This document shows, one piece after another, positions 7,219-62,044 of a stretch of 64,000 bases of DNA. The notes beneath the pieces are model-generated. The model worked only from the letters and a program-made list of their open reading frames with translations. It had not been told where the DNA came from and ran no database searches. Positions within the stretch are counted from its first letter, which is position 1, and each line of letters starts with the position of its first letter. The position numbers and the translations under genes are program-made. The DNA lies in the NCBI GenBank assembly GCA_009859145.1, contig VRVR01000051.1, positions 171,155 to 235,154 of the forward strand, given 5' to 3'. The DNA is from Andalucia godoyi And28 (taxonomy: Eukaryota > Protista > Jakobida).

Positions 7219-7231
7219 CACACACACACAT

Positions 7232-7284
<53 letters not shown>

Positions 7285-7309
7285 CGTGCATCCATCCATC
7301 CATCCATCC
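7219..7309. repeat. Compound (CA)n(TA)n(TCCA)n microsatellite
   Basis: Direct reading; lies about 30 nt upstream of the AKR start. Confidence 0.95.
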
Positions 7310-7337
7310 GCGATAAAATATACAGCCAACACAGAGA

Positions 7338-8378: not shown

Positions 8379-8546
8379 TCACACAGTCACCATCATCATC
8401 ATCATCATCATCACAGCGTTCACCTCTTTCACGATGTCCAACCAGGGAGTGTTTGAAGTTTACGACGACGCGTGGTAATAAATATGGTACAGTACAACAA
8501 TGACATTAAAAAAATAAAATAAATAACAATGCTTGGGCGATGGATG

Positions 8547-21110: not shown

Positions 21111-21183
21111 TCCGCTATAGCTCAGTAGGTAGAGCGCTCGGCTGTTAACCGGTAGGTCCTAGGTTCGATCCCTAGTGGCGGAG
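21111..21183 (+). tRNA. tRNA-Asn (GTT)
   Basis: Acceptor TCCGCTA/TGGCGGA, D-arm GCTC/GAGC, anticodon loop CT-GTT-AA, T-arm CTAGG-TTCGATC-CCTAG; T-run Pol III terminator follows. Confidence 0.95.
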
Positions 21184-21336
21184 CTTCTTTTTTGTTTTCT
21201 TTTTGCGTCCGGAGCTCTCTTTTTATACAGCAGGTCACCGGGAAAAAAACAAAAAAAAAAACGAGTCCTTGGATATGAAGATATACGCACGTATTGTCAA
21301 TGAAAAAATAAAGAGGCAGATTTTTACACGGGAGCG

Positions 21337-24210: not shown

Positions 24211-26895
24211 TCAGATTTTGGAGCGAACGCGGTGTTCCGCGACCGAGTACCTTCCAACTGCCAGGGCATGAACTTCGTCAGGGCCATCTGCAATGCGCAG
24301 ACAGCGAGCAGCAACGAAAACGTGCGCGAGGAAATCGTGGTGCAGTCCTTCGGCGCCAAATACCTGGATGGCAAAGTCGATGACAAACTGCGCTGTTTGA
24401 GGGATCGCAAGCTTGACTTCGGATACAAGTCGGCGGATCAGGTTTTCCTTTGCATCGGCAGTTGTGAGCGGTGGACTGACACCATCGCAGATTGCTGCGG
24501 TACGGATCGACGCCAACGCCGACCGCGAATTGCCGTGGATCTTTGCGGATTCCAGATGATCCAGTTCAACGCACGTGGACATGGTCAGGAGCCGAGCTTG
24601 GTCCACGAGCGATCTGCATTTTGCAAAGGTCTGGAGAAAAGACGGCTGCTGCACCAGCGGCATTCCAAACACGACACGGGACGAAGCGCGATCGACCACT
24701 TCTGAAAGCGATCTCTCCATGGCCCCGACAAGGCGCATGCAATGATGGAGGCGGCCAGATCCGAGCCGGGCTTGCGAAATTCGGAAGCCTGCCCCAAACC
24801 CTCCAACAAAGCCAGTCGAAATTGGCACGCGGACATTCGTGAACTTCAATTCCCAGTGGCCTTGAGGAGCATGGTCGAATCCAAAAGTAGTCAGGGGTCG
24901 GATGACTTCTACGCCACGGGTTTCGACCGGAACAACAACGATGGATTGCGCGTGTCGTTTCTCAGACGCCTTACTGGAAGCACCTTTCACGGCGGTGGCA
25001 GAAGGCGACGATACACTCGCTTCTTTGGATTCCGGCTGCGGGGGGGACGTTGCAACAACAAGCAAGAATCGACATCGAGAATCACCAGCTCCAGTAATCC
25101 ACCATTTTTTGCCGTTCAGCACAAGTTCCTGCGATGCCTCATCAACCTCGACAGAAAACGAGAGATTAGAGGCAGGGTCCGAAGACGCCGTTCCTGGCTC
25201 GGTCATGGCAAACGCACTGCGAATCTGCCCGTCCAACAGCGGTTTGAGCCATTTCGACTGCTGTTCCTCTGTTCCGAACTCCATCAGCACTTCCATGTTT
25301 CCAGAATCAGGGGCATTGCAATTGCACACCTCCGACGCGATTGCACTGCATCCCATGAGCTCGCACAGGATTCCGTATTCTGTATTGGAGAGCCCGGGGC
25401 CGCCGAATTTCTCTTGAAACCGCACCGGAACAAACAAGTTCCACAACCCCAGCGACTTGGCATCACGTTTGAGAGTCTCAATGAGCGGATGCGGAGTGGC
25501 AAGGCGGTCCTCGGATGAAAGCCCACAAGACTCTCTTGCAATATCAGCTTCTGCCGGAATGATCCTTGCCTCCAAAAACCACTTTAATTTCCAAAACAAA
25601 AACACACACTCCTTGGAAATCAAAGGATAGAAGGGTGCCGGGATGAAATGGGGCATCGCAGGGGTCCAATCCAGAGACTTTTCCGCGATGCTCCAACCAG
25701 CGGCGGCAAGATTCTTGGACAGCGCACCCACAACCGCTGCGTTCGCAGAAGACGCATTGCCGTTCAAATGCCGTTTGTATACGCCTTGCAAAATCGCTGC
25801 GACTCGGAAGAACGAAAACGCAAGATAAAATTGCCAGTTGTCAATTCGCTGCCAATCTCGACGAACGGCGTAGGCCAACAACAGGGACTCTTCACGCGGA
25901 ATGTTGTGTTGCTGCAACGGGTCGACGGGTTTTCTGCGGTCCTGTCCCCGCGCAGTCGAAGCATCCTTCTTCGACTTCGAAAAACTGGAGGTGCCTCCGA
26001 ACCCTGCAAACATGGGCGAATCGGACGGCAAGTGATACAGCAAGCAGAGATAGGACAGGTCTGCAAGTGGGTTGCCCACCGCCGCAAGTTCCCAATCGAC
26101 CACGCCGATAATACGGGGCTCTGTTGGATGAATGATTAGGTTATCAATGCGGAAGTCGCCATGCGTCATGCACACGTTTTCCGAAGTGGACGACTTGCCA
26201 GACCACGGAGCCCATTTCAGCGAATCGGCGTCTGCGGCGGACTTCTCCAGATTTTGGCACAGGCGATCGAGGTCTGGCTGTGGTCCCGTCGCAGATGCCT
26301 GGGCCTGGGTTTTCCATCGCCCAACCTGCCGTTGGAAAAACATCGAGTTGGAGCCCTTTTGTCTTTCTCGGACACCGCCACTGCTGCTGCCAAACAAGAT
26401 GGAGAATGAACTGATGGGGAGTGAATGCAGATGGACAAGGACGTCAATCATGCTTCGAAGCACCAGCGGCCGTTCCTTTTCTGGAACATCCAGGCAGCGC
26501 GGATCGCGGAACGAGCGTCCTTCAAGATACTCCATTACAAAAAACGTCACTCCAATGACCGACGGGTCCTTGCACAGCAGATACGGCTGCGGAACAGGCA
26601 CGCTTCCGGGGTGCTTGTCTGAAATGACGCTCATGATCAGGAACTCTCGATCCACCGCATGCGCAGTCTTGAGAAGAGTCCCCGGGGGCTGGCGGCGCAG
26701 TACAAACGGAACATTGAGCTCATCACGAATCAAATACGTTGGGTTGGACTGACCAGTCGCGAACTTCTCCGCAGACGCAATCGACCCCGTAAATTGAAAC
26801 GACGGCCGAACAAGCACGTCTCGCGAACTCGCAAGCTCACCACGGACTGCCTTTCCAAAGAACGCAGACAGCTTTCGAATGTCGTCTGTATTCAT
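24211..26895 (-). CDS. ACAD11: Acyl-CoA dehydrogenase family 10/11 (APH-kinase-like domain fused to ACAD domain); C-terminal -SKI
   Basis: GQSNPTY, LRRQPPG, HAVDREF, HGDFRIDN and DWE (kinase-like); NCNAPDSGNME, SAFAMTEP, GKKWWITGA, QARLGSGRLHHCMR and RIADGPDEVH (ACAD). Confidence 0.92.
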   Translation of the reverse strand: MNTDDIRKLSAFFGKAVRGELASSRDVLVRPSFQFTGSIASAEKFATGQSNPTYLIRDELNVPFVLRRQPPGTLLKTAHAVDREFLIMSVISDKHPGSVPVPQPYLLCKDPSVIGVTFFVMEYLEGRSFRDPRCLDVPEKERPLVLRSMIDVLVHLHSLPISSFSILFGSSSGGVRERQKGSNSMFFQRQVGRWKTQAQASATGPQPDLDRLCQNLEKSAADADSLKWAPWSGKSSTSENVCMTHGDFRIDNLIIHPTEPRIIGVVDWELAAVGNPLADLSYLCLLYHLPSDSPMFAGFGGTSSFSKSKKDASTARGQDRRKPVDPLQQHNIPREESLLLAYAVRRDWQRIDNWQFYLAFSFFRVAAILQGVYKRHLNGNASSANAAVVGALSKNLAAAGWSIAEKSLDWTPAMPHFIPAPFYPLISKECVFLFWKLKWFLEARIIPAEADIARESCGLSSEDRLATPHPLIETLKRDAKSLGLWNLFVPVRFQEKFGGPGLSNTEYGILCELMGCSAIASEVCNCNAPDSGNMEVLMEFGTEEQQSKWLKPLLDGQIRSAFAMTEPGTASSDPASNLSFSVEVDEASQELVLNGKKWWITGAGDSRCRFLLVVATSPPQPESKEASVSSPSATAVKGASSKASEKRHAQSIVVVPVETRGVEVIRPLTTFGFDHAPQGHWELKFTNVRVPISTGFVGGFGAGFRISQARLGSGRLHHCMRLVGAMERSLSEVVDRASSRVVFGMPLVQQPSFLQTFAKCRSLVDQARLLTMSTCVELDHLESAKIHGNSRSALASIRTAAICDGVSPPLTTADAKENLIRRLVSEVKLAIPQTAQFVIDFAIQVFGAEGLHHDFLAHVFVAARCLRIADGPDEVHALAVGRYSVAEHRVRSKI

Positions 26896-29387: not shown

Positions 29388-29411
29388 TCAAAACTGTCTT
29401 TGTTGTTGTTG

Positions 29412-29442
<31 letters not shown>

Positions 29443-32400
29443 TCGACTTCTCTGCGCATCTTGCGTTCACGCAAAAAGTTTCGCATGGCGGTCAGATCCG
29501 GGCCGCTGTTGGGACGCGCATTGCCACCGGTGGCGGCGCGACGACTGCTATCCGAACTGCCTAGGGACTGAGACTGAGTGCGGTGGCTGGACTCTTCGGG
29601 AGCGGAAGAGAACGTCGTGGCGGTCGTCGGCGTGGAAAAGAAAGGGTCCGATGCATATGTGTTCAACGACGCAAGCGCCGAGCTTCTGGACGTAGAGGGC
29701 GCAAAGCCTGTGGACGGCGGCGACGTAAAGTCATTCGTTGTCGCACGATGTTCAAAGTACGAAGAGTACAAATTCGAACGCGCAACACTGCTGCTCTCCT
29801 GTGATTTCAAATCTTCCTTGCGTTCTTGCGCACTGTTCCAGTTCGTGCTCGTGTACCCGTACCCTCCATTGTGCGGGTCGGATGGCTGGTAGGAAGACGA
29901 AAATGTCGATGCAGTCGTCGACGAGTCGTCAAGCGACGCAGCCAGTGCATTGGCGCCAGTTGCAGGTCCCGAGAGGCGCTGCTCAAGGAAGCGATTCGAA
30001 GAATTCAGCTGGTCATTTGCAGCACGCAGACGCGCGACTTCTGAACCCATGCGCTGCCGAGCAACCTCCGCTTCGTGCAGCCGATCGACGACGGCAGCCA
30101 TGTCTCCCAACTCTTCTTTCACGGACCGCACCACTGCGAATTGCTGCCGGAGAACAGTAATTTCCGTCTGCAGCTTTTCGTTCGCAGCACACTGCTCCTC
30201 CAGGCGTTGCTTCAGGCTGCCAAGCATGCTCTGAACTTGTTCAGCCATTCGAGAAACCCGGCGGCGGTGAGCCTCTTCCAAAACCTCGTCAGCAACGACG
30301 GAGTAGCTGCCATGCACCGAACGAGTGACAGACTGACCAGCGTGGGTTGTGCGAGGAGGCGAATAAACTCCAGGTGCAGCCGCAACCGTCGGATTTGGAA
30401 GCTGCAACATCGCTGCGACATGCGCAAGAATATGTGTCCACGATTCTCGGGACTTGACGTGCACCTCTGTAACAGACGAGCCAGGAACGATGGCAACCAC
30501 CTGGCCTTGGGTATTCGATGTATACTCACCTGCATGTTCTCTTCCTGGGGAAGAAGCCAGAGACGACGACGGTGTCGATCCTGGAAGCGAAACTCCCGTA
30601 ACCGCATACGCAGCAGGCTGCAGAACAAGAGTGGCAACAGTGAGTTCCTCTTGCAAATTCGCAATGAGAGCATCTCGAATTGCACACATGCGAATCAGCA
30701 TCAGAAGTGCCGCTTCCAGTCGAGGAATGGACAACGTTGGCGGCCCAGCATACGCCATCATCGGACCAGTCAACGAATCAGAGGACACGGAAGCCGATGT
30801 TGAAGAGGAAGAGAAGGAATGCGCATTGCTCGACGATCCAAGCACAATATGCTCTCCTTCAGACTCCAGGTTGCTCATGAATGCAGCTGCAGGCATGCGT
30901 ACAACATCGCCGTCCCTGGTCAGATAGTCCACGGTAGCGTGCACACGAAGCAGTGCTTCGTGGATCGCCCGAATCGCGGCCTTTTCAGAAGGGTTTGCAG
31001 GACCATTCTCTCCGGATCTGCGAGATGTGTGGAACTGAGGATCCATCGACGACGACGACGACTGCAGCACGTGAATGGTGTCCTCCAGTGTCCTCACATT
31101 CGACTCCGCAAGACCCACTTGGTCCCTCAAACTCGACAAATGTTCTTGCAATGATGTATTCTGCTTCCTCAGCGACACCACCTCCGAAGTCAACGAGCGG
31201 ATGTGCTCACGAAGACCCGCAGCGCCATTCACACCGTTCGGAGTGCTCAGCAGTGCCGATCGAGCATCCTCGGCGTGCGAATCCTCCGCCCAGCCATTCG
31301 AAACGACCAAGGGATTATTCATGAATGCATTGCTGTTCGGGGGTTGGCTTTGTGACAGCGATGTGCTATTCACTCCAATACTTCCGCCATTCACGGAGAC
31401 TTGCAAAGACTTTTCGGCAAGGGCGTTCACCAGTTGGGATTCGAGCTGTTCGGCTTTCGTTTTCTCTCTCATCCACGCTTGCCGATAATGCTCCACTTGG
31501 TCCTTGAGAGACGTAATTTCTTCCAAGTATTTCCGGATGTCCTCGGATGGATACTGATGCGAGGCCTGCGCATCCAACTTTGATTGCAGCATTCGACACA
31601 GGGCCTTGAAATCAACCTCGGTGTTGATCGTGGGATGTACACGAACCTTGGCGGCCCGCTGTCCAAACAGCAGGGACGTGAGCGACTCTTGGAGATTATC
31701 GTTTGAAGGACCGACATTGACAACCAAAGATGTACGTGCATTCCCACCAAGAACATCTTGCAGAAGCCGTGTAAGTTTGGAATCTCTCCAAGGAATGAAT
31801 TTTTCGCTGGTGGAATCTCCTCTGGAAGTCGGAGTAGACGGTGGTTGATGCGAGGGAGACGACGACGATCCGTCATCGTAGAACGTGTTACTCTGCGGGG
31901 CGTGTGACGAGTTCGAGGACGCGGCCAACGCTGCAATCACATTACCCAGCGCGGACAATGACAAATTGATGGCTTTGGCCTCCTCAAAGAGCTGGCCTTC
32001 TGGGAGGGTTTTCGAGGCCCTTTCCGATCCTGCAAGGTCCACACACATCAGCTTGGACCGCGTAACGGAGTGGTCTGCTTCATTCCGTCGCTCCACGGTC
32101 AACGTGAACACAGTGTGCGAGCGGGACGACTTTGCATTCATCTTCGTGGCCGCAACTGCTTTTGCCTTCGACCCATGCATCAGCAGCGCCATCACCTGTT
32201 CTTTGGACCGCACAACATGCTCCGTAAGCCCGTCCACATAAACGCGGCCATCGCTAGATTCTCGAATCTTCAGGTTATTTCGATTCAGATTGGACATGGA
32301 CATGGACATAGACGGCGATGCAGACAGCGATCCCGACGATCCGTTCTGCTGCAGTGTCGAAAACAGATTCTGGCTCGCGAATGCTGACCGCGATGAGTTG

Positions 32401-33248
32401 GACGACGGTGACGCAGGGGTGTACACAGAGGAGGAGCTCGCCAGTAGATCCTGGATGGTCTCCAAGTAGATCTGGCAGTACGACACGGTCACTCGGAATG
32501 GGTTCACAAACGCACTTGGGGCCGAGGTCGACGTGGGAACCCCGCTCATCGCCAAGCCTGAAGTCCCACCCGGGTGCGTCGTCATTCCTGCAATCTTTCC
32601 AAGATCCGGATGGACCTTGTTGAAGTACGAGAAGCTCGCTGCCCGAGCAATCTCCTGTTCTCCATGGACCCTGCGGAACAAATCCGACAATGCACGAGGG
32701 ATGATGCCTTCATTTTCATGCGGTTGCAGCTCTGCAAGGGTGTATGTCTTTCCAGCACCTGTCTGTCCGTATGCAAGGATGCATGCATGCACGCCCTGCA
32801 TGACTGCATCGACCGCTGGGCGACCGACTTGCTCGTATACATCTGCCTGTGTACTCGACGGCGAGAACACGGAATCAAAGACAAACGACTTTGTCTTTTC
32901 ACCGACCTGGACGCTGATTTCCCGGTCAATAGGCGACGCCCGAATCAGCGAGCAGTCCACCTCGGACATTGTTGGAGGTCGCAGCCGCGCACTGACCATG
33001 ATGCGCGAATTCGCAGGAGACGCCGCACTCAGCATGCTCTGCACCGTTGCATCGTGCTCGGACACCTTGGAATGAGACCCAGCGTGCAACTGAGGCTGGC
33101 TCTGTAAATGACTCGACGCCACATCGTAACTCCCAGAGATCCCAGACGACGACGACGACGACGACGACGACGAGCCAGACTTCGATTGCGGTCCATTCGG
33201 CCGAGCAAACGACACTCGCGAAGGAGTCCGGGGCGAAGAAGCACGCAT
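29388..33248 (-). CDS. N-terminal-motor kinesin with coiled-coil stalk (about 1286 aa)
   Basis: ARLRPP, FVFDSVF, AYGQTGAGKT (P-loop), SSRSH (switch I), DLAGSER (switch II), INLSLSALG and RDSKLTRLLQD; coiled coils and poly-Q end. ATG 33248 preferred over the track start, whose extra sequence is repeat-like. Confidence 0.93.
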
Positions 33249-33742
33249 TCCAGCCAGCCAACCAACCAACCAAAAAACAAACAAAGAAACAAACGAAACG
33301 TGAGAACACCTCGATCCACACACTCTCAGCACACACTCACGCTCTCTGACACACGCTCTCTGACGCACGCTCTCATGCAGGCATCCGCGCAAGAACGGAA
33401 GAGAAAGGAAAAGTATCCCACAGAATTTTGGTGTTTGGACGGACTTTTTACTGCTGATCACCAAAAGTTGCGGACGTTTGGGCGGCCAGTAGGAAACCAG
33501 TCTTGGTAATTCAAAAAGGAAATTGCGCTTTGATGCTGGATGGATGATGCTAGAATCCGCTACAGTCGATAGGAATTCCCACCTCTCTCGAAACAAAGCG
33601 AGAATAAGGCAACGGAGTCCATTTAAGAACAAAATGACGAAAGTGTGCAGAAGAAATGGGAATTTATTGATGGCGATTGTCGAAGTTGCTCTCACCACCG
33701 ACCATTCCGCGCTATTGACGAGGTTGTTATTGTTATTGTTGG

Positions 33743-34375
33743 ATGTTTGTTCGGCACGTGTCGTCGTTGTCGTCGTTGTCGTCGTTGTCGTCGTTGTCGT
33801 CGTCGTCGTCGAAGCAAGTACTGCTGGATGGGATACTAAGTCGGCGTCCGCTGTGGAACCGGTATGTGGTGGAGAAGAACAAGCTGTTTTCGCTGTTGCG
33901 CAAAGTGCACTATGACAGTCGGTCGACGCTGATTCGGATGCCGTGTCCTATGCGGTTCTTGTACGGACCTCTGGACCACCTTTCCGTGTATGTTCCTGCG
34001 ACGACAGCGTTTGCCGAGAAGGACGTGTCACAGGTCACTCTTCGATGGTGGTTCTGGGAGCGGTCGTTTGCGCCGTCGGAGTTGGACCAGATGTGTGCAT
34101 TCATCGACGAGATCCAGCTGGAAAAACGCTGCATTGCCCTCGTGGGAGATATTGCAAAGTCTTTTTCACCGTCAGCGGACGTACGGCAGAAGTTCGAGAT
34201 GGCTCGCAGAGCCTCCACGAGCCTTAACCTCGACGACTGGGTCGGGAATACCAAGAAGATCGTGCTGAACCCGGGGGAGCACCCGGATATGGAGGAGGGC
34301 CAACGGGCGATTGTGAGATCCTGGAGAGGCACGTTTGATGTGCAATACGAGTGGCTCCCGAAACACAAGGTGTAG
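33743..34375 (+). CDS. Hypothetical protein with presequence-like N-terminus (210 aa)
   Basis: ATG ORF beginning MFVRHVSSLSSLSSLSSLSSSSSK (no acidic residues); head-to-head with the kinesin; no family recognised. Confidence 0.6.
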   Translation: MFVRHVSSLSSLSSLSSLSSSSSKQVLLDGILSRRPLWNRYVVEKNKLFSLLRKVHYDSRSTLIRMPCPMRFLYGPLDHLSVYVPATTAFAEKDVSQVTLRWWFWERSFAPSELDQMCAFIDEIQLEKRCIALVGDIAKSFSPSADVRQKFEMARRASTSLNLDDWVGNTKKIVLNPGEHPDMEEGQRAIVRSWRGTFDVQYEWLPKHKV

Positions 34376-34861: not shown

Positions 34862-37800
34862 TCAGCGATTTGGATTTGCAGCTGGACGGCGAGCAGGTGC
34901 CTTTGCGAACAGAGCATCCATCTGGCCAACAAGGTCTTCTGGACGCCCTCGACTGGAATACACGGGCATGGTAAGCGCATGTTTTCGTGACGGCTCCTCT
35001 GTCATGTTCTGCGAGCTCTTTGATTTTGATTTCAGTTGTGCCACAGCAGAAACCATTTTGGACATTCCGGCTTCAAAGAAGCTCTTCTTCCTTGCCTGAA
35101 CATTGGACACGGCTGCCTGGATTTCCTCGGCACTCTTACCTTCCCGACGAGCAGCCACAAACGCCTTGTACCGTTCCTGCTCAAACTTGAATGCTTGCGA
35201 AAAGTTCATCAGTTCGCCCAGCTGATCAACTTTCACCTTTCCTTGCGAGAATGCCTTCATGTACGTGACGGAGCCGTCCAAGATGTTCAACAGCGTGGGA
35301 CGGTCAATACGAAGTGTGCACGACGGACTCGCACACGCACACTTCTCGACGGCAACATCGGCATTCGAGACAATAATGGAAGCAACTTCTGCTTCGACGC
35401 CATCCACAAGCACCACGAACAGCAGGGCACCGTTCCAGTTCGTCGGGGTGTAGCAAGTGGGGATGAATTCCAGAGCTTCCTGCAGCCTTTCGCTTTCTGA
35501 CATCTCCCCCTTGTCGACGTCCGAGCTGTCGCTTTCGTCCTCTAGCACCCAATGAAAGGCAGCACAGAACATCACCATTCCAGAAATATCTTCCGAGCGA
35601 ATGACACCGTCCTGGAACAACTTGGAATAGGAAGTCCGACCTGTGAGAAACCGGCACACAACTTCTATACTCGCTTCCAGGACGAAGAAGAATTCCGACC
35701 CGTCTTCCGTCTTCTCTTCCCGGCCTGCAGAATACCTCTCGACAATGAGGGACTCCGAAGTGGTCCGAACAATAATTGCTGGAACATGGCCTCCAGAAAC
35801 ACGAAAGAGTGCGCTCTTCGGCATCAGCGACCCATTCCAGGAGGCAACAAGTTTTGCGAATGCTGCTTCAAGACTCGCCTCATCGCGCGCACGCACATCC
35901 TCCACGGCCTTTTCTTCTGCAGTCAGAACCTTTGGCTTGTTCCCGTTCTGTACAAACGCCTCATAGCCGTCTTTGGACATTGGAAACGCCTGCGAAAACA
36001 TCAGCGCCATACCAAGATCCGATACCATGAGCTGACCCTGCATAATGGCCATCATACTGTCCAGGGCCCCGGACAGCAATGCCTCGAAAACCTCCAACGT
36101 CCCAGACACATGCAGGACAAACACATCAAGTCGGTTCTTGCACGTCAAAATGCAGCACTTTCCTTCCGCGACGCGGATAACCACGCAAACGACTCCCAAT
36201 ACTTCCCACAGGATATCTCCTTGGAAAAAACACGAGGCCGGCGAGAAGATTGTCAATAAATAATGCAACGCGTGTTTGAGCTTGGCGTGGCGTGCAACGA
36301 TGTTGCACTTCTCAAAAGATCGCAAACCAATTTTCGACTTTGCAGCATCAGCAAACGCAGCAAACCCCTCTTTCGAGACAGGAAATGCTTGTGTAAACAT
36401 CAGCCCCATAGTCAAGTCGGACAGCGACAACCTTCCCTCCATCATTGCTGCCATCGTATCCAGAGTACCCGACAAAAGTGATGAAAAGGTCTCCAGCGCA
36501 CCTGAAACTTTTAGAACGAATGGCGAGGACGGAGACGTTTCCGTTGAGAATATAGCACAGCATCCGTTTTCCACGCGAATGACGATAAATACAACATCTA
36601 TGATTTCCCAAATAATGTCGCCCTGGAAGACTGCCGTTGCCGGAGAAAATGCAGAAGCCAAGTACTCGAGAGCCAGCAGCAAGCTCTCGTGCTCCCCGAC
36701 AACCTCCGATTCGTCAAAAGGAACAAGCAATGATTTCCGTTCCGATTCTTTCTTCGCCGCCTCAAAGACTGCAAAGCCCTCTTTTGATACCGGAAAAGCC
36801 TGCGAAAACATGAGTGCCATTCCCAAATCCGAAACGGACAATCGGCCCTCCATGATCGCCGACATGCTATCCAAGGTCCCCGACAGCAGCGCTTCGAACG
36901 TTTCCATCGCTCCAGACACTTTCAGAACAAAAACATCGCTGGCTGCCGAGCACGGAGTCGACAATATCTCGCAAGCCCCGACAGCTACGCGTATGATAAT
37001 TGACGCAACATTTTGAACTTCCCACACAATATCACCCTGGAAGTAGCAGGTCAGCGGGGAGAACGAAGACACCAAATACTGAAGAGCAGTGCGCAGTTTT
37101 GGGTGTTGCAGAACAATTGGGCACGTGTCAAAGGGAACGGGAACAGGGACGGCGGACTTGTCATTCTCTGATTCTTCCAAATGTTTCCGAGCTTCAAAGG
37201 CTGCAAACCCTTCTTTGGAGATAGAGAATGCCTGCGCAAACATGAGAGCCATGCCGATGTCCGAGACAAATAGTTTTCCTTCCATGATTGCCGCCATGCT
37301 TTCCAACGAGCCTGACAGGAGTTTTTCAAACGTTTCAAGAGAGCCAGAGACCTTCATCACAAACGCATCCAGCGGTTCGGAAGCCGAAAAAACCTCGCAT
37401 ACTCCGTTCTGCACGCGAATGACCACATACACAATCCCCTGAACTTCCCATAGAATGTCACCCTGGAAGAAACACGTTGCCGGGGAAAACGTGGACATCA
37501 AGTATTCGAGAGCCAGCTTCAACGGTCCCCGGCTCTGAATGTCCGTGCTCTCTGTAAACCTGACCAATGCCGCCGGTGTCGCCGCAGCAGCCGGTGATGG
37601 CTCCGTGATGCTGTTGGAACTGGACGAAGAAGACAGCGACGGCGACGGCGACGACGACGATGACGTCTTTATATTCCGTCGCCTAATACCAGCATTCGCA
37701 AACAAGTCGGCCGCTGCACCAGGACTGGAAAACAGCACGTCATTCGCGGTTGCCGACTGCCCTGCCGTCGCCATCTGCAGCTCGGGAAGCTTCGAACTCG

Positions 37801-38164
37801 TGACATGGTCATTTGCCTGGATAGATGGCATTGTCGTCTCGGAGCCCGCGCGAGCAACAGGCTGCTTGTCGAGCATCTTGAGCGTTGGAACCCTCGATAT
37901 AACATGCTCTCTGTAGTCGGGCTTTCGGCATACTGGGTTTCCCGACAAGTCGAGTTCTTCAAGGGCCGGGGCATCCAGAATCCCATCCAGCTGCCGAAGA
38001 AACGAGAACTTGTTGTGGCTTAGATCAAGATATCGGAGACTCGCACACTTTAAAAACGAGTCCGTTTCATGGTACTCCTGGCGCGAAATCGTCGCTCGTT
38101 CAATTCGAGAAACATCGCCCCGAATCCCTGCAGCGATTCCAATCTTGTCCGCCAACAGCTTCAT
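34862..38164 (-). CDS. LRR protein followed by six tandem SCP2 (sterol carrier protein 2)-like domains (1100 aa)
   Basis: N-terminal LRYLDLSHNKF / LEELDLSGNPV plus LRRcap (YREHVISRVPTLKMLD). Four near-identical ~115-aa repeats plus two diverged ones; the last contains CTLRIDRPTLLNILDGSVTYMKAFSQGKVKV, the SCP2 signature. Confidence 0.85.
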   Translation of the reverse strand: MKLLADKIGIAAGIRGDVSRIERATISRQEYHETDSFLKCASLRYLDLSHNKFSFLRQLDGILDAPALEELDLSGNPVCRKPDYREHVISRVPTLKMLDKQPVARAGSETTMPSIQANDHVTSSKLPELQMATAGQSATANDVLFSSPGAAADLFANAGIRRRNIKTSSSSSPSPSLSSSSSSNSITEPSPAAAATPAALVRFTESTDIQSRGPLKLALEYLMSTFSPATCFFQGDILWEVQGIVYVVIRVQNGVCEVFSASEPLDAFVMKVSGSLETFEKLLSGSLESMAAIMEGKLFVSDIGMALMFAQAFSISKEGFAAFEARKHLEESENDKSAVPVPVPFDTCPIVLQHPKLRTALQYLVSSFSPLTCYFQGDIVWEVQNVASIIIRVAVGACEILSTPCSAASDVFVLKVSGAMETFEALLSGTLDSMSAIMEGRLSVSDLGMALMFSQAFPVSKEGFAVFEAAKKESERKSLLVPFDESEVVGEHESLLLALEYLASAFSPATAVFQGDIIWEIIDVVFIVIRVENGCCAIFSTETSPSSPFVLKVSGALETFSSLLSGTLDTMAAMMEGRLSLSDLTMGLMFTQAFPVSKEGFAAFADAAKSKIGLRSFEKCNIVARHAKLKHALHYLLTIFSPASCFFQGDILWEVLGVVCVVIRVAEGKCCILTCKNRLDVFVLHVSGTLEVFEALLSGALDSMMAIMQGQLMVSDLGMALMFSQAFPMSKDGYEAFVQNGNKPKVLTAEEKAVEDVRARDEASLEAAFAKLVASWNGSLMPKSALFRVSGGHVPAIIVRTTSESLIVERYSAGREEKTEDGSEFFFVLEASIEVVCRFLTGRTSYSKLFQDGVIRSEDISGMVMFCAAFHWVLEDESDSSDVDKGEMSESERLQEALEFIPTCYTPTNWNGALLFVVLVDGVEAEVASIIVSNADVAVEKCACASPSCTLRIDRPTLLNILDGSVTYMKAFSQGKVKVDQLGELMNFSQAFKFEQERYKAFVAARREGKSAEEIQAAVSNVQARKKSFFEAGMSKMVSAVAQLKSKSKSSQNMTEEPSRKHALTMPVYSSRGRPEDLVGQMDALFAKAPARRPAANPNR

Positions 38165-38580
38165 TCCTGTGCGTCGTGAGGCCGCTCTGTGTCGCTCTGT
38201 ATACGACGCAAATCAACGAACACACACACAACACTAATAAAGGAAAATGATATATATTACAACAACAAAAAGAAAAGAAAAGAAAACTGCAAACTGCAAA
38301 CAAGCTTTGATGAAGCAGTAAATAACAAAACAAAAGACAAAACAAAAGTCCGAAAATCGGGGAACGTTCTTCGCTCTTTCTTTGGACAGTTTGATTGTGC
38401 ATGATGCTTGAGTCCGGAGCTTCCAAAATTCCCGAAATGTCGAAAGCGCAAACCGTTTCCTCGCAAGTCAACTCATGAATAGTTCCCGTAATCAGCAAGT
38501 TGGTGGCCTGTTTGTGGAGTCAGGAGTCGTAGTAGTAGCCGTGGCGGCCGTGGAAGCAGCAGCAGAAGAAGTGCTCGAGT

Positions 38581-39927
38581 ATGCGGCATACTGCGAGTGC
38601 AGTGGTGCTGGTGGTCGGGGTGGTCGTCGTGATGTCTGCAATGTTTGGTGGTGTTGTGCATGCGGTGACGGGCGATACACTGCTGTTTGATAATTTCTAT
38701 ACTGGCGACTTGGACGCGATTGGGTGTTCGTGTGACGCGACCCTTCCGAATGGGTCGTGGGACAATACGCGAAACTGCTATTGTGTGAGCGGAATATGCG
38801 ATAGACAGCGCATTGCAGCCGAGCCGTGTGTCTCGGGGCTTCAGTGCTTCTCTGGGAACTGCACGTCTGGGCTGTGCGCTGCGGTGCCGACCGGGCAGCC
38901 GTGTTTGCGGTCCAGAGCCCGGACGTACCGAGGCGAGATTCCCAACCCGTGCGCAAGAGACTCGTTCTGTACGTTCAATGACTCGTCGAGTCTGCGAGGA
39001 ATGTGTGTGCCGAAACTGCCGCTGGGGAGTGCGTGCGGCTGGCAAGAGCAGTATTACGATGGATGCAGCGCCGGGACGTTCTGCTACATTGCCAACGAAG
39101 ACAGCGGCACGTGCGTCCCCATGTTTCAGCGTGGGTTTGAAGCTTCGTGCTCGGGAGGGTCGTTTTCGGATGATTTCTACTGCAAAGCGAGTCTCGTGTG
39201 TGCCGATGGCGTTTGCCAGCAAAACACGCCGTTTTTGTGCGAGACAGACAGCGACTGTCCACGGCTCTCTGGAGGATGCGCAGTCTCCACGGGCAAGTGC
39301 TTGGCCGCAAATCCGGCTGTTATCAATGTTACCAAATGTGATGAATCGTACCAGTCCTTGGTCAGCTGTTTGGCGCAGCACCAGTGCTCCTGGACTGTGG
39401 GCGGTGCACCAACGCTGCAGGACTCGTGCAAGTCACATTGTTTCCGTGAGCTCATTCAGGTGTCTTGCTGTGAAACACCCAATGCACTTCCAGAGGGATT
39501 GAGTTGTTCTGTCGACGCCTTTATCCCTCCTCCCACTGCAGGCTGCAGGAGCTTAGGTGCCAATTCGGGCAGTGACAGCACTCGCGTTTGCAGCCTGTGT
39601 GTGTTTGCCATCGTGTTGGGTGTTGCGATGCTCGTTGCTGGCGTATGTCTGCTGCGTTTTGGCGTGAACTCCTCCACGATTCGTCTGCTGTCTTGGATGA
39701 TGTTTGTGGGGAGTTTTGCTTCGATTCTGACTGGCTTCCTTGTTCAATTCGCAGGCTATGACTGCGCAGTTTGTCTGTTTTGCATCATTTTCCAAACTCC
39801 TTTCGTGTTGACATGGATTGTGGGATCCTTGTTCTACAGAAGAAACCTTTACGGAAAGACAGTGGCTTCCGAGTACGCAATGTTTGATGTGCCGAGTGCC
39901 TCCCGAGACGACCCAGATGCAGATTGA
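38581..39927 (+). CDS. Cell-surface Cys-rich protein with signal peptide and about three C-terminal TM helices
   Basis: Hydrophobic N-terminus ending VVHA; ectodomain with many C-x-S-G-x-C and G-x-x-C motifs; three hydrophobic segments, then a short tail containing YAMF. Confidence 0.8.
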   Translation: MRHTASAVVLVVGVVVVMSAMFGGVVHAVTGDTLLFDNFYTGDLDAIGCSCDATLPNGSWDNTRNCYCVSGICDRQRIAAEPCVSGLQCFSGNCTSGLCAAVPTGQPCLRSRARTYRGEIPNPCARDSFCTFNDSSSLRGMCVPKLPLGSACGWQEQYYDGCSAGTFCYIANEDSGTCVPMFQRGFEASCSGGSFSDDFYCKASLVCADGVCQQNTPFLCETDSDCPRLSGGCAVSTGKCLAANPAVINVTKCDESYQSLVSCLAQHQCSWTVGGAPTLQDSCKSHCFRELIQVSCCETPNALPEGLSCSVDAFIPPPTAGCRSLGANSGSDSTRVCSLCVFAIVLGVAMLVAGVCLLRFGVNSSTIRLLSWMMFVGSFASILTGFLVQFAGYDCAVCLFCIIFQTPFVLTWIVGSLFYRRNLYGKTVASEYAMFDVPSASRDDPDAD

Positions 39928-40275: not shown

Positions 40276-42945
40276 TTACTCGTCGTCAACAGCATCCTGT
40301 TCTTCAACGGCTGCGCCAGCATTGGCATTGGCGTTCTTCTTCTTGTTTCTCTTCTTCTTCTTCTTACCCTCTCCACCAGCGGCATTTCCCTCGGCAATCG
40401 TGGCCGATTCCTCTGCACCACTGGCGACAGGCGCAGACGCTTCAGAAGACGGATGGCTCACCGAGGCACTGTCGGTTTCCGGCTGCGGCTCCGGCTCCGA
40501 CTGCACTGCTGGAAGGGGTTCCGAAGACACATCAGACACGGAAGTAGGAGCAGCAGCAGGAGCGGCAACCTCGGTCGAGGAAGATTCTTGCTGTGGGCTT
40601 TCGACAGCTGCTGCGGCGGGAGCAGTCGCAACCGGGGCAGATTCTTCCTTGGTCTCTTCCTTCGCAGGCTCTGCAGGTGCTACAGCAGCGGCGGCGGCAA
40701 CAGCGGGTGCAGCCTCGGAAGTGGCTGATTCTGGTTTTGCTTCTTCAGCAGGCACAGGGGCAGCTGCTTCGGACTTGGCACTCTCCGCAGGCGCTTCAGC
40801 AGGCACAGGGGCAGAAGAGGTCTCAGCCGCGGCAGGAGCAGCAGCAACAACCGGGGCAGGCGCAGAAGGGGCGGCGGCGGTCGCAGGGACGGCAGCAGGA
40901 GTGGCAGCGGAGGACTCCTTGGAAGATTCTTGCTTCTTCTCCGTCTTCGAGGCCGACGCCTCTTCTGTCTCTGCATACATTTCCTCAATGACCGAACCAT
41001 ACTTCTCATTGACAATGCGCCGCTTCAATTTCATAGTAGGCGTAAGCTCCCCACCATCAATTGTGAAATCAGCCTCGAGAACGCGAAACTTCTGGATCTT
41101 CTGCGCGCTGGAAATCGCTCTTGCATTGGCCTTGTCAATTCCTTTCTGGATAATTCCAATGACAATCGGATCCTTGGCAGCATCCGTGGTGGTGGTCGAC
41201 TTCGATCCTGCAGCAGACAAAATTTCGATGACGGATGCAGACAGATCCTTTGTTGGAACACCGTTCTCATCAGGCTTCGACCTCAGCGTCACCACGGCAG
41301 ACAAGAACTTCCTCCTTTCGCCAATGACCATAATGTTCGAAATAATGGGAGTCTCCTCCTTCACAGTATCTTCGATCAAAACAGGAGGAATGTTCTCTCC
41401 GCCAGAAGTAATGATAAGTTCCTTGGCCCTGCCAGAAATCATAATCAGTCCTCGCTCCTTGTCCTTGTACATGCCAAGGTCTCCCGAGTGAAGATATCCA
41501 TTTTCATCAACAGACTCTGATGTAGCTTGATCGTTCTTCAAATATCCCAGGAATCGGTGGCGCCCCTTGAAGATCAATTCTCCTTGTCCTTGCTCATCTG
41601 GTTTATCGAGAACAAGCTCAGTGCCTGGCATCGCAAATCCGACAGATCCCGTAGCATAGCGGTCTGGCAAGGAGATGGTCTCCGGACCCGAGCACTCAGA
41701 CATGCCGTAGATTTCAAGGATTGGAATGCCCAGCGACAGGAAAAACTCGAGGGTTTCACGACCGATTGGTGCTGCAGACGTTGCACACAAACGGCACTCG
41801 TCGAAACCAAGTTTTGCACGGACCTTGTCAAACACCAAGCGACGTGCAATTCCATAGCCCCAAGGCTTGGACTTTCCCGACTGCTCAGCAAACCCGCCTT
41901 CCAAACCCTTTCCTCGGGCCCATTCCGCGATCTTCTTCTTCATTCCTGTGGTTTGCCGACCCGCAGCTTTCATGGCTTCCATGATCTTTTCCCACACTCG
42001 GGGAACTCCCAAGAAGACAGTCGGCTTGACGGTCTGCAGAGTGTGCGGAAGCGATCCGCGCAATGCATCGGGCTTTGCAAACCAGACAGAATAGCCAACA
42101 GACATTGGTCCGTGAACATCAAGCATTTGCGCTGCAATGTGTGACAGCGGCAGATAGGAGATCATGCGATCCGTCTCGACAACCTTGAGGGACTCGATTG
42201 CAACACGAGCAGTCCAGGTGCAGTTGTCATGCGAAATCATGACTGCCTTTGGGAAAGACATGGTTCCAGAGGTATAAATGAGCGTGCAGCAATGGCCAGT
42301 CTGTTGGTCCTTGATTCGCTCTTCAAGAACTGCATCCTCCACTGCATCGCCAAGTGCCATGAAATCCGTCCAATTGTACACAGGCGGGCGATTCTCCGGA
42401 CGCTGCGTTGCAAAGCCCTCGGCCCAGCAAACGTACGCCTTTACCTTTGTCAATCGATCCGAACCAAACGAAGAAAACTTCTTCAACTGCGATTCATTCT
42501 CAACAAGCACCACGGAGGAATCCGAGTGTTCCGCGACGTAAGCGCATGCCTCGGGATTGTTGGTCGTGTAAATTCCAGCCGCAATTGCACCAGCAAAAAT
42601 CGCGCCATTGTTTGAAAGAAACCACTCGAGCGAGTTGAAACCCAAAATGGAGACCCCGTCGAATCTCTGCACGCCAGCGCCAATTAGTGCTTTTGCGGTC
42701 TTTCGGATCAGTGCTGCATACTCAGACCAAGTGATCTTGCTGTACGTGTCCTGGCCGGGTTTCAAGTAGTACACAGCATCACGAGAGCCGTTCTTCTCTA
42801 CGCACTCGGCAAGAACCTGCATGACGGTCTTCGGAGCATACCCTGCAGCACCTTCCCCGAGGGGAAACTGCATCGGAACGCGCACATCCGTCGTCCAGTG
42901 CGTGTCCTTTCCAGGAAAAACGGTCGCTTCAGTCGAAGAAGACAT
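40276..42945 (-). CDS. Long-chain acyl-CoA synthetase, bubblegum (ACSBG) type, with long low-complexity C-terminal extension
   Basis: LIYTSGTMSFPKAVMISHDN (AMP-binding), SYLPLSHIAAQ, EIYGMSECSGP, GYLHSGDLG and GRAKELIITSGGENIPP; WTT-type N-terminus typical of ACSBG. ATG 42945. Confidence 0.93.
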   Translation of the reverse strand: MSSSTEATVFPGKDTHWTTDVRVPMQFPLGEGAAGYAPKTVMQVLAECVEKNGSRDAVYYLKPGQDTYSKITWSEYAALIRKTAKALIGAGVQRFDGVSILGFNSLEWFLSNNGAIFAGAIAAGIYTTNNPEACAYVAEHSDSSVVLVENESQLKKFSSFGSDRLTKVKAYVCWAEGFATQRPENRPPVYNWTDFMALGDAVEDAVLEERIKDQQTGHCCTLIYTSGTMSFPKAVMISHDNCTWTARVAIESLKVVETDRMISYLPLSHIAAQMLDVHGPMSVGYSVWFAKPDALRGSLPHTLQTVKPTVFLGVPRVWEKIMEAMKAAGRQTTGMKKKIAEWARGKGLEGGFAEQSGKSKPWGYGIARRLVFDKVRAKLGFDECRLCATSAAPIGRETLEFFLSLGIPILEIYGMSECSGPETISLPDRYATGSVGFAMPGTELVLDKPDEQGQGELIFKGRHRFLGYLKNDQATSESVDENGYLHSGDLGMYKDKERGLIMISGRAKELIITSGGENIPPVLIEDTVKEETPIISNIMVIGERRKFLSAVVTLRSKPDENGVPTKDLSASVIEILSAAGSKSTTTTDAAKDPIVIGIIQKGIDKANARAISSAQKIQKFRVLEADFTIDGGELTPTMKLKRRIVNEKYGSVIEEMYAETEEASASKTEKKQESSKESSAATPAAVPATAAAPSAPAPVVAAAPAAAETSSAPVPAEAPAESAKSEAAAPVPAEEAKPESATSEAAPAVAAAAAVAPAEPAKEETKEESAPVATAPAAAAVESPQQESSSTEVAAPAAAPTSVSDVSSEPLPAVQSEPEPQPETDSASVSHPSSEASAPVASGAEESATIAEGNAAGGEGKKKKKRNKKKNANANAGAAVEEQDAVDDE

Positions 42946-43409
42946 TTCACAAAACAATGCTAACGAGCGGAAAGATAGCCGACTTCAGAGCGAAGAAAAA
43001 AACATACAAACAGAAAAAAAAAAAAAAACCAGGAAAGAAAGACTAAGAAACAACAGCAACGAAAACATCAACAAGAAGCAGCAGCAGCAGCAAGGGAAAG
43101 GCAAGCTACGGGCTTCCAAGTCTTTCAAGTGACAAACAGAAACGACAGCCATTGTGGTAGGACTGACATTAGAGGGGAGAGCTCTGACATTTTTTACGCC
43201 TGCGTTCTGACTTTTCTTCTTCTTTCCCAATTTCAGGGGTGTGACTACCGATTACAGCAGGCAGTTTTTTGAGAATACAAACACGCACGCGTCCCCAAAG
43301 CACAGGCCGGCGCATTTTAAATATTAAAATAACAACAACATAAATACCAATAATAATAATAATAATAATAACAGCTGAAAAAAAAGAATTTACAGGAAAA
43401 TGAATTGGT

Positions 43410-44775: not shown

Positions 44776-44847
44776 CTCTCCTAACAGGATTCGAACCTGT
44801 GCATTGGGATTCAAAGTCCCACGTCCTAACCACTAGACGATAGGAGA
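44776..44847 (-). tRNA. tRNA-Gln (TTG)
   Basis: Minus strand TCTCCTATCGTCTAGTGGTTAGGACGTGGGACTTTGAATCCCAATGCACAGGTTCGAATCCTGTTAGGAGAG: acceptor TCTCCTA/TAGGAGA, anticodon stem TGGGA/TCCCA, loop CT-TTG-AA, T-arm ACAGG/CCTGT; T-run follows. Confidence 0.95.
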
Positions 44848-52790: not shown

Positions 52791-52863
52791 TCGCCCATAG
52801 TTTAGGTGGTTATGACACATCCCTCTCAAGGATGAGACCCGGGTTCGAGTCCCGGTGGGCGAG
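52791..52863 (+). tRNA. tRNA-Glu (CTC)
   Basis: Acceptor TCGCCCA/TGGGCGA, anticodon stem CATCC/GGATG, loop CT-CTC-AA, T-arm CCGGG-TTCGAGT-CCCGG; T8 terminator shortly downstream. Confidence 0.95.
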
Positions 52864-53051: not shown

Positions 53052-53289
53052 GGCTTGGTTTGAACAGTGCGTTTCTTTTTTTCTTTCTTTTTGGTCGAGG
53101 CTCCGATTCTGGTTTGATTTGTACTGATAACAGAAGTTCGCTGACTGCATGCGACTGCCGCGCAGTTCATTATTAGCTAGATTCGCTCTTTCCATTCAGT
53201 CGCGGTCCCAGCAGAAGCAGCGCTACTCCAAGAAAACCTGCTCGACACCGCTATTTTCGCTCGGGCGGCATCGTACGAAATACAGCAAC

Positions 53290-61468: not shown

Positions 61469-62044
61469 GGATACTGTACGCTGCAATCCTTACAAAGTGA
61501 AAAAATAATAGCAAACTGATAATCAAGAAGAAAGAGTCTGAGATCCAGGAGGGAGATGGTGGTGGGAAAAAAAGAAAAAGACCTCGGTTTCCTGTGCAAC
61601 CAGAAGAAACTCGACACATCGGCCTCCACTCAACACTGCGTGCGATTTCAGCACATGGGAAGATGTCGCTTGCTTTCGACGAAAAGGATTCAGCCCTCCT
61701 TGCCCGCAGCTTGCATGGAAGAACTGGGAGCCGCGCAAGCTGCTACGAAGCGAAAAAAAAAAACTGGAAAGCTGCCAGCCTTTTTCGAGGCCCACTGATG
61801 GGCAACGATGTCCAGCGCGTCCTGCATCAAGGGCTTCAATTGATGCTCATGTTGAGTGTGGATCCTCTCTTTCACCACAATTTCTCCAGCATCCTGTTTT
61901 GCAGCTCGTTTGTTCAGATTCTTCTTTTTCTTTTCGTTCACCCTTGTTGAAAACCTCCCGAGTCGTGAGCAAAGGCAGATTCCTTTTTATTTTTTTTCAA
62001 AGAAGAAAAAAAAAAAAAGGAAAATTAAATTAAATTTAAAAAAA

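Follow-up and report, generated by a model that had tools for sequence, protein, structure and literature searches.

An LRR module joined to six tandem SCP2-fold units in Andalucia godoyi, a putative multivalent binder of hydrophobic ligands

SCP2 is a classical lipid-carrier fold, and nearly all work on it concerns either single domains or domains appended to beta-oxidation enzymes. The fold consists of an N-terminal helix, a five-stranded sheet and helices that close a pocket, and it provides the hydrophobic-ligand pocket of SCP2 itself, the C-terminal domain of MFE-2, UbiJ and the C-terminal domains of alkylsulfatases. In its classical form, SCP2 is a single domain of ~13 kDa that ends in a PTS1. 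Two SCP-2 domains, fused to a dehydrogenase, are described for the D-bifunctional protein TgHAD-2SCP-2 of Toxoplasma gondii (Lige et al. 2009, cited in PMC3234224), and, according to one review, Leishmania donovani lacks a homolog of the SCP2-type LTPs. Here, we describe a gene of the jakobid Andalucia godoyi And28 whose product links an N-terminal LRR module to six SCP2-fold units. It is located in a 64,000-nucleotide stretch of contig VRVR01000051.1, the whole of which was analyzed and is referred to below as the window.

Gene model and N-terminal LRR module

The gene is a complete coding sequence at 34862..38164 of the minus strand and specifies 1,100 amino acids, followed by a stop codon, in the order LRR module, spacer, six SCP2-fold units, long helix and basic tail. 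Its ORF starts with ATG and has in-frame stops at most 25 codons upstream, and the protein collection holds an identical 1,100-residue gene model, whose sole source is 'eukprot'. A first-pass annotation of the window had proposed an LRR/LRRcap, an S/P-rich linker and six SCP2-like units for this protein, an architecture on which Pfam, an HMM built from foreign units and the AF2 and Foldseek analysis of the fifth unit now agree (see below). No enzyme domain was detected in a Pfam scan of the whole protein, and its 1,100 residues contain no PTS1, PTS2 or transmembrane segment; the C-terminus reads ...PAANPNR, in line with the earlier remark that a PTS1 is lacking. Members of the peroxisomal SCP2/SCPx/MFE-2 group are marked by a C-terminal PTS1, by a thiolase, dehydrogenase or hydratase domain joined to SCP2, or by both, and the protein displays none of these traits.

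Genes of lipid metabolism abound in the window, among them those for an APH+ACAD fusion, a TFE-beta-type thiolase, lipin and ATP-citrate lyase, and an acyl-CoA synthetase-like gene is situated 2 kb upstream of the SCP2-array gene. Other neighbors encode RabGGT-beta and an aldo-keto reductase. Genes alternate strands around the SCP2-array gene, with plus-strand genes at 33743-34375 and 38581-39927. The long ORFs are intronless, a polypyrimidine tract is found upstream, and a search against Rfam returned three tRNAs only.

The N-terminal LRR module (37844..38116, minus strand; residues ~17-107), identified by Pfam and by sequence matches in the PDB, comprises one degenerate and two canonical LRRs, followed by an LRRcap (YRxxVIxxxPxLKxLD). 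In the full-length scan, the Pfam families LRR_9, LRR_8 and LRR_4 match residues 34-107, with LRR_9 scoring 28.3 and thus below its gathering score of 30.5; once the N-terminus is scanned alone, the scores are 31.7 for LRR_9 (against 30.5), 29.6 for LRR_8 (against 27) and 29.4 for LRR_4 (against 27). The best PDB sequence matches are FAP279 (7n6g; 32.6 bits) and the N-terminal domain of TbCFAP410 (8axj; 32.5 bits), to both of which the cap aligns, and further matches include U2A', dynein LC1, DRC3 and LRRC23. TbCFAP410 has an N-terminal LRR domain of five repeats, and CFAP410 is characterized by a conserved patch on the surface of this domain and by a helical bundle at the C-terminus that tetramerizes (PMC11865075). 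Orthology to CFAP410 (C21orf2) was considered and rejected: only residues 17-103 align, with residues 42-128 of 8axj and at 32.5 bits, and the rest of the protein is the SCP2 array, without the C-terminal tetramerization domain of CFAP410. The LRR module is followed by an S/A/T/P-rich low-complexity spacer (37553..37834, minus strand; residues 111-204), whose 94 residues include 21 S, 16 A, 8 T and 8 P. With pLDDT values of 24-34, this segment of ~95 residues is predicted to be disordered.

SCP2-fold units and their predicted arrangement

Compared with the Pfam SCP2 family (PF02036; curated cut-off 21.3 bits), the whole protein scores 96 bits over five stretches. An HMM built without the query, from units of other organisms (hereafter the foreign-only HMM), recognizes six of six units in register, and its unit starts are within ~10 nt of the repeat starts given in the first-pass annotation (37531, 37105, 36691, 36289, 35880 and 35500). 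When the units, all encoded on the minus strand, are scanned individually, R1 (37157..37525) reaches 25.7 bits with Pfam and 52.8 with the foreign-only HMM (AF2 pLDDT 74-91), R2 (36734..37111) 23.5 and 54.8 bits (pLDDT ~78-94, with one low-confidence loop at residues 404-410), R3 (36332..36700) 21.6 and 48.5 bits (pLDDT 73-91), and R6 (35120..35503) 23.8 and 113 bits (pLDDT 82-96). These four units exceed the Pfam cut-off, whereas R4 (35936..36289) lies marginally below it at 20.7 bits, with 52.4 bits in the foreign-only HMM and a pLDDT of 65-93.

The diverged unit R5 (35552..35887) has no Pfam match when scanned alone. It contains an inserted loop, lacks the trailing AFxF..F..F helix and is followed by an acidic hinge; the foreign-only HMM covers it over HMM positions 4-110, with 19.8 bits. 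AF2 nevertheless models it confidently as an SCP2 fold (pLDDT 86.4, pTM 0.79), and the significant Foldseek matches of this model in the PDB are SCP2-fold domains only (E values down to 1.9e-5, TM 0.42-0.63). The assignment of an SCP2 fold to all repeats, as initially proposed, thus holds for six units. A profile of the units also matches SCP2 structures in the PDB (1c44/2c0l/1qnd; E 3.6e-6) as well as the SCP2-like domain of MFE-2 (1ikt/6z1w). The fold itself also occurs in non-lipid-transfer roles, as in the C-terminal domains of Eis and alkylsulfatase, which are among the Foldseek matches. The terminal unit, R6, is the most conserved one, with the signature SEE.+LEEA..F.P..Y ... AFKFEQERYKAF. 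Its earlier description as the clearest SCP2 signature is borne out by the family-specific HMM (113 versus 48-55 bits) but not by Pfam, which scores R1 slightly higher. A conserved aromatic helix (AFxF-[ED]xxx[FY]xx[FY]) trails each of R1-R4 and R6.

Units R1-R4 have a pairwise protein identity of 50-59% and share the motifs quoted for them in the first-pass annotation, and R5 and R6, which it had called diverged, show 19-31% identity to the other units. Its suggestion of a recent internal duplication, by contrast, is contradicted at the DNA level: the identity among R1-R4 is 52-64%, synonymous sites are saturated in four of the six pairs (pS 0.69-0.85), and TRF detects no DNA-level repeat. 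With dN values of 0.33-0.50, dN/dS is ~0.2 or lower. With these divergence values, the duplication is ancient, and the units have been kept by long-term purifying selection.

In the full-length AF2 model, the six units share a common helix-4 beta-2 alpha-beta-alpha order, with pLDDT values of ~65-96 in the blocks and below 50 in the hinges; the alignments guiding AF2 consist of SCP2-like units, and the full-length alignment contains no LRR rows. The pTM of this model is only 0.34, which argues for the absence of fixed inter-unit packing, and Foldseek searches with it return single SCP2 domains only. The units are thus predicted to fold independently, in a beads-on-a-string arrangement with flexible hinges. 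The array is followed by a C-terminal extension (34865..35131, minus strand), in which AF2 and charge distribution indicate a long helix (residues 1012-1050; block pLDDT 81-95) and then a disordered basic tail (pLDDT <50), with a net charge of +9 over residues 1020-1100. An amphipathic membrane helix in the tail is not supported, given that the sole nearby window with a high hydrophobic moment (residues 1005-1022) is, for the most part, located ahead of the tail and has a mean hydrophobicity below zero.

Enzyme-free SCP2 arrays in other protists

The protein has no close ortholog in 5.8 billion clusters, and neither these nor 1.84 billion representatives yielded a second protein that joins this LRR to an SCP2 array of this kind, consistent with the initial impression of an unfamiliar architecture. 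Word-indexed searches with the full-length protein or the array only returned just the query itself and LRR-only matches, and a profile search yielded one metagenome fragment. An exhaustive HMMER search, finally, gave 45 matches, the best of them with 29% identity. A search of bacterial and archaeal genomes found no encoded relative, and no kinetoplastid ortholog was found. A literature search on LRR+SCP2 proteins, tandem SCP2 domains and Anaeramoeba SCP2 retrieved no described architecture of this kind.

Among the relatives are SCP2 arrays without an enzyme domain, of 4 to 8 or more units, from Anaeramoeba, Prymnesium and marine/environmental eukaryotic metagenome contigs. KAJ6234109.1 of Anaeramoeba flamelloides (P0005), listed as an 'SCP2 domain-containing protein', contains at least eight full units, KAL3898313.1 from a Prymnesium sp. 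MAG is likewise an enzyme-free SCP2 array, and loci L001-L004 and L006 encode arrays of 3 to 5 or more units. The gene model of the Anaeramoeba homolog is wrong, being split at a poly-A run. BLASTP aligns residues 416-1021 of the query with residues 34-700 of KAJ6234109.1 in a collinear manner over 690 residues (E 2e-37), a stretch that takes in a diverged penultimate unit, the counterpart of R5, as well as the canonical terminal unit. R6 also aligns with the terminal units of P0005, P0012, P0015 and P0017, and a helical or charged tail follows the terminal unit in P0012, P0015, P0017 and P0043. No LRR was found upstream of the array in L001-L006, within the available sequence.

The next-best relatives are bacterial SDR-SCP2xN-MaoC proteins of the MFE-2-like type (P0006, P0011, P0014 and P0020), which contain 2-4 tandem units. 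The post-unit motif AFxF-[ED]xxx[FY]xx[FY] is restricted to the enzyme-free matches of eukaryotic type, and since the bacterial proteins lack it, they represent a different branch. TgHAD-2SCP-2 is absent from the 45 HMMER matches and therefore not a close relative. The view of the first-pass annotation that SCP2 domains usually occur singly or in short tandems is not supported in light of the long enzyme-free arrays (4 to 8 or more units) and of bacterial enzymes of the SDR-SCP2x3-4-hydratase type, whose existence places the array in a wider, still unnamed family. The enzyme-free arrays to which that of A. godoyi belongs make up an old family that is scattered among protists. The protein represents an unstudied type, with remote relatives only, in a few other protists.

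Possible functions and comparison with known systems

Going by the identity of its domains only, the protein most likely functions as a flexible, multivalent binder or shuttle of hydrophobic ligands that is anchored by its LRR module. We lean, with moderate confidence, toward a soluble, non-enzymatic poly-SCP2 protein that serves as a locally anchored, multivalent buffer or shuttle for such ligands. Its units may bind several hydrophobic molecules at once, such as fatty acids or acyl-CoAs, sterols or isoprenoid lipids, which would make the chain a locally anchored lipid buffer or shuttle of high capacity. Two possible docking elements would flank this chain, the LRR+LRRcap at the N-terminus and the long helix with its basic tail at the C-terminus, and the former, connected through the disordered spacer of ~95 residues, could fix the cellular site of action. 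We infer that the units bind ligand, and of which type, that the LRR, which was probably gained by the array in this lineage, acts as an anchor, and that the protein is cytosolic. Long chains of enzyme-free SCP2 units are kept under purifying selection in several distant protist lineages and are therefore functional.

The linkage of LRR and array could, in principle, be an annotation or assembly artifact, with adjacent LRR and poly-SCP2 genes read as one ORF, as might be suspected from the lack of an LRR in all array relatives, the low-complexity nature of the joining spacer, its internal Met codons (residues 111 and 131) and the split Anaeramoeba homolog, an example of an erroneous gene model within this family. 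We regard such an error as highly improbable, however, because the 3.3-kb frame is unbroken from the LRR through the array and both other frames are stop-rich, the spacer stays open with a probability of only 0.033 in shuffled sequence, and the codon-position GC of LRR and array alike resembles that of the adjacent genes. Moreover, the LRR alone (~110 residues) would make an unusually small stand-alone gene, without a stop codon. A different role for the intact protein is suggested by the origin of the two best PDB matches of its LRR, FAP279 from the Chlamydomonas central apparatus (7n6g) and the N-terminal domain of CFAP410 (8axj; PMC11865075), which are both ciliary and followed by dynein light chain 1, DRC3 and LRRC23. 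The SCP2-fold units might accordingly have ceased to carry lipids and be structural or protein-interaction beads of a cytoskeletal or ciliary scaffold, docked by the LRR onto an axonemal or basal-body complex; the named relatives, Anaeramoeba and Prymnesium, belong to flagellated lineages, and R5 has lost its Pfam-detectable SCP2 signature. Yet, matches of ~32 bits are weak and typical of the LRRcap class, which also includes spliceosomal U2A', ANP32 and NXF1. None of the array relatives carries an LRR, so that the core role of the array cannot depend on it, and the residues conserved across units correspond to standard SCP2 helix and strand motifs, making a scaffold of this kind unlikely overall.

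The multi-unit bacterial relatives with their SDR and MaoC hydratase domains and the abundance of lipid-metabolism genes in the window would fit an array that acts in trans as a substrate-holding accessory, in effect a detached SCP2 part of MFE-2/SCPx, and presents acyl-CoAs to enzymes of fatty-acid or steroid beta-oxidation. However, the protein has no PTS1, PTS2 or obvious presequence for peroxisomal or mitochondrial delivery, the neighboring genes lie on both strands, the functional clustering of genes is uncommon in eukaryotes, and the bacterial matches form a branch without the post-unit helix, so that we consider an accessory role of this kind distinctly unlikely. The lipid buffer or shuttle remains our preferred reading. 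It could be extended to the bolder and quite doubtful notion that poly-SCP2 proteins are an unrecognized class of eukaryotic lipid-transfer proteins, in which flexible chains of 4-8 or more box-type carriers pass or buffer lipids between two anchors, here an LRR-bound partner and an acidic membrane contacted by the basic helix or tail, in a mode that would match neither single-domain shuttles nor VPS13-type bridges. If so, the LRR-tipped protein would be the first poly-SCP2 member with an identifiable docking module. The LRR also offers an experimental handle, as its binding partner would reveal the working site of the chain. Should the units bind lipid, the family would bring a multivalent, tethered design to non-vesicular lipid transport, alongside the kinds already known; should they not, it would plainly exemplify an SCP2 fold that has been put to a second use as a structural repeat.

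Among the described systems, the small LRR proteins of the LRRcap type (LRR_9; CFAP410 N-terminal domain, FAP279, U2A' and dynein LC1) share the LxxLxLxxN repeats and the YRxxVIxxxPxLxxLD cap with the N-terminal module, although the alignments span 60-90 residues at ~32 bits, a likeness at the class level only, and the module has only about three repeats, whereas TbCFAP410 has five. The six units are members of the SCP2 family (PF02036; 1c44, 2c0l_B and 1qnd) by profile and predicted fold. Unlike classical SCP2, however, the protein has six units per chain, no PTS1 and an extra aromatic helix on units 1-4 and 6, and it exceeds the two units of TgHAD-2SCP-2. It contains SCP2-fold units of the same family as MFE-2/HSD17B4 and the bacterial SDR-SCP2xN-MaoC proteins, but in these enzymes dehydrogenase and hydratase domains flank SCP2, whereas here there is no catalytic domain. 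The protist arrays, at 24-31% identity, differ in that the LRR is limited to the A. godoyi protein, within the available sequence, and in their number of units, which is six here, at least eight in Anaeramoeba and, for the GC-rich contigs of metagenomic origin, 4 to 5 or more. Nevertheless, they share with it the post-unit helix, the collinear order, a diverged penultimate unit followed by a conserved terminal one (SEE.+LEEA..F.P) and the charged tail.

An array of six SCP2-fold units behind a short LRR

The target open reading frame (34862-38164, - strand) comprises 1,100 codons in a single frame and begins with an ATG that is preceded by two in-frame stops, both no more than 25 codons upstream. 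An identical 1,100-residue gene model is present in a large protein collection, where it carries "eukprot" as its only source label and forms a singleton at 90% identity. At its N-terminus (aa ~17-107), one degenerate and two canonical LxxLxLxxN repeats are followed by an LRRcap (YREHVISRVPTLKMLD). LRR families are matched at aa 34-107 when the full-length protein is scanned against Pfam, and the isolated N-terminus exceeds the curated cut-offs of LRR_9, LRR_8, LRR_4 and LRR_1, in agreement with the LRR/LRRcap proposed in the first-pass annotation.

In the remainder of the protein, SCP2 (PF02036) scores 96 bits across five stretches. When the array was cut at the boundaries originally proposed and each piece was scanned on its own, the expected SCP2 match was obtained for R1, R2, R3 and R6 (units numbered from the N-terminus), but not for R4, which fell 0.6 bits below the cut-off, or for R5, which gave no Pfam match. 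An HMM built from units of other organisms, excluding both the query sequences and a diverged Anaeramoeba unit, nevertheless recovered all six units in register, at 37525-37157 (R1), 37111-36734 (R2), 36700-36332 (R3), 36289-35936 (R4), 35887-35552 (R5) and 35503-35120 (R6) of the - strand, starting within ~10 bases of the positions first called. R1-R4 scored 48-55 bits, R5 19.8 bits (HMM positions 4-110) and R6 113 bits, and a six-frame translation of the window contained these six unit matches only. A profile of the unit alignment matched rabbit/human SCP2 (1c44, 2c0l_B, 1qnd) at E 3.6e-6 as well as the SCP2-like domain of MFE-2.

Structure prediction likewise points to the SCP2 fold. The AlphaFold2 model of R5 (mean pLDDT 86.4, pTM 0.79), guided by a 22-row alignment whose rows are themselves SCP2-like units, shows the order helix, four strands, two helices, strand, helix. 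When it was compared with the PDB by Foldseek, every significant match was to an SCP2-fold domain, namely alkylsulfatase C-terminal domains, the Yarrowia, archaeal, human and mosquito SCP2 proteins, UbiJ-SCP2 and the C-terminal domain of Eis. The full-length model (mean pLDDT 69, pTM 0.34) was guided by a 16-row alignment that contains no LRR rows, such that it is informative beyond the first 200 residues and silent on the LRR. It contains six folded units with a common secondary-structure order (block pLDDT ~65-96), separated by hinges with pLDDT <50 (aa 334-344, 476-489, 612-620, 743-751 and 874-885), and again matches only single SCP2-fold domains in the PDB. An extra helix, formed by a conserved AFxF-[ED]xxx[FY]xx[FY] segment, trails each unit except R5, and R6 leads on into a long, confident helix (aa 1012-1050) and then a disordered tail. 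Because the low pTM implies no fixed packing between units, the array is predicted to resemble beads on a string. Net charge is negative in the units (-2 to -9) and positive in the tail (+9). Neither a PTS2-like motif nor a hydrophobic segment long enough for a transmembrane helix was found in the protein, and its C-terminus (...NPNR) bears out the reported lack of a PTS1. The target is thus a soluble protein in which six maintained SCP2-fold modules are strung together. It has no catalytic domain or organelle-targeting signal, and its array is bounded by a small protein-binding LRR at one end and a helix with a basic tail at the other.

The similarity of R1-R4 had been attributed to recent internal duplication, a view that our results contradict. 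Their pairwise identity is 50-59% at the protein level and just 52-64% at the DNA level, synonymous differences (proportion 0.69-0.85) are saturated in four of the six pairs, and Tandem Repeats Finder did not detect a DNA-level repeat at the unit period in the target. Given these values, together with a dN of 0.33-0.50 and a dN/dS of ~0.18-0.20 in the pairs where it is computable, the duplication is old and every copy has been held by purifying selection, which makes it more likely that each unit is important.

Possible function and genomic setting

By analogy with the role of the SCP2 fold in SCP2, MFE-2, UbiJ and a two-SCP2 Toxoplasma protein, each unit would hold one hydrophobic ligand, and the chain would thus act as a multivalent buffer or shuttle for lipids, with the LRR setting where it sits. 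The strongest of three competing explanations is that the units serve as structural or ciliary scaffold beads. By sequence, the top PDB match of the LRR is FAP279 (7n6g, 32.6 bits), from the central apparatus of Chlamydomonas, closely followed by the LRR at the N-terminus of CFAP410 from Trypanosoma brucei (8axj, 32.5 bits); U2A', dynein light chain 1 and others come next. However, CFAP410 has five LRR repeats and tetramerises through a distinct C-terminal domain, whereas the target has three repeats; as the likeness reaches only the LRRcap class, we reject the target as a CFAP410 orthologue.

We give less weight to the idea that the array assists beta-oxidation enzymes in trans. Lipid-metabolism genes are unusually dense around the target, with an APH/acyl-CoA-dehydrogenase fusion (ACAD10/11-like; 24211-26895, -), an AMP-binding acyl-CoA-synthetase-like gene (40276-42957, -), a thiolase of the trifunctional-enzyme-beta type (51043-52509, -), lipin (Lipin_N+LNS2; 53149-55704, +) and the ATP-grasp/citrate-binding subunit of ATP-citrate lyase (60185-61486, -). 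However, functional clustering of genes is rare in eukaryotes, so this density counts little and is a weak hint at most. Least favoured is a fused gene model. The S/A/T/P-rich spacer that joins LRR and array (aa 111-204, - strand) is open in the target frame and contains stops in both other frames, only 3.3% of shuffled spacers keep an open frame, and the codon-position GC of both parts resembles that of neighbouring genes. On these grounds, we accept LRR and array as one gene, as predicted from the DNA and pending transcript evidence.

The window derives from an intron-poor eukaryote and has genes on both strands around the target. Immediately before the target ATG, a polypyrimidine (T/C-rich) tract of some length and a (TG)n run that follows it (38240-38330, - strand, sense) resemble a trans-splice or 5'-UTR signal. 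A divergent 448-aa ORF (38581-39927, +) begins 416 bp from the target start; its product is hydrophobic at the N-terminus and in C-terminal segments and Cys-rich in between. This ORF lacks a Pfam match and may encode a lineage-specific membrane or secreted protein. On the other side, a 210-aa ORF oriented opposite to the target, also without a Pfam match (33743-34375, +), separates it from a long kinesin-like ORF (29388-33698, -), whose translation displays motor motifs, extensive low-complexity stretches rich in Ser and a poly-Gln run at the C-terminus, and whose real ATG probably lies downstream of the listed GTG start. This alternation of strands disfavours a kinetoplastid-style polycistron. 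Three intron-less tRNA genes, Asn-GTT (21111-21184, +), Gln-TTG (44776-44847, -) and Glu-CTC (52791-52863, +), are interspersed among the protein-coding genes.

Relationship to other tandem SCP2 proteins

Apart from the query itself, word-indexed searches of 5.8 billion clusters for close relatives found nothing but LRR-only proteins. An exhaustive HMMER search with aa 205-1100 against 1.84 billion representatives gave 45 hits with E <= 1e-3, of which the top one reached 151 bits and 29% identity; as single-sequence HMMER would miss overly distant SCP2 domains, "unique" refers here to this subfamily in the databases searched. No paper on LRR+SCP2 proteins or long SCP2 arrays was found. The target is built from well-known domains, and their combination, which the first-pass annotation did not recognise, is real and undescribed as far as database and literature searches reach.

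The HMMER relatives fall into bacterial-type MFE-2-like enzymes and enzyme-free SCP2-unit proteins. The latter include Anaeramoeba flamelloides KAJ6234109.1 and KAL3898313.1 from a Prymnesium sp. MAG, with the remainder on marine/environmental contigs. The KAJ6234109.1 gene (8001-10694 of locus L001, JAOAOG010000272.1) begins mid-unit, and the ORF directly upstream (6280-7953) encodes three complete, near-identical units and the end of a fourth. Since only a poly-A/Lys run divides them, the two probably represent one gene with at least eight full units that was divided in two by a frameshift in a homopolymer or by a wrongly called boundary. Other relatives' loci contain three to five or more units. 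P0043, a marine metagenomic protein (963-1892 of locus L005), has a single subfamily unit and, behind it, a helical tail of ~150 aa rich in Lys/Ala/Glu, suggesting that the family may descend from a minimal form of one unit with a charged tail. None of the proteins or loci of enzyme-free relatives examined showed an LRR, indicating that the enzyme-free array is an old, patchily distributed family to which the LRR was added in the target lineage. This wider family is a more interesting result than the single target gene.

KAJ6234109.1 is collinear with the target over ~690 residues (E 2e-37) and shares its plan, in which the penultimate unit is diverged, the terminal unit well conserved and the tail charged. 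In contrast, the bacterial-type relatives (metagenomic proteins P0006, P0007, P0011, P0014, P0016 and P0020) are single chains in which two to four tandem SCP2 domains are joined to a short-chain dehydrogenase and a MaoC hydratase, an arrangement of tandem SCP2 within an enzyme that appears common among uncultured bacteria, whereas the target has no catalytic domain. The aromatic helix motif following the units is likewise absent from these enzymes but common to the target and the enzyme-free group.
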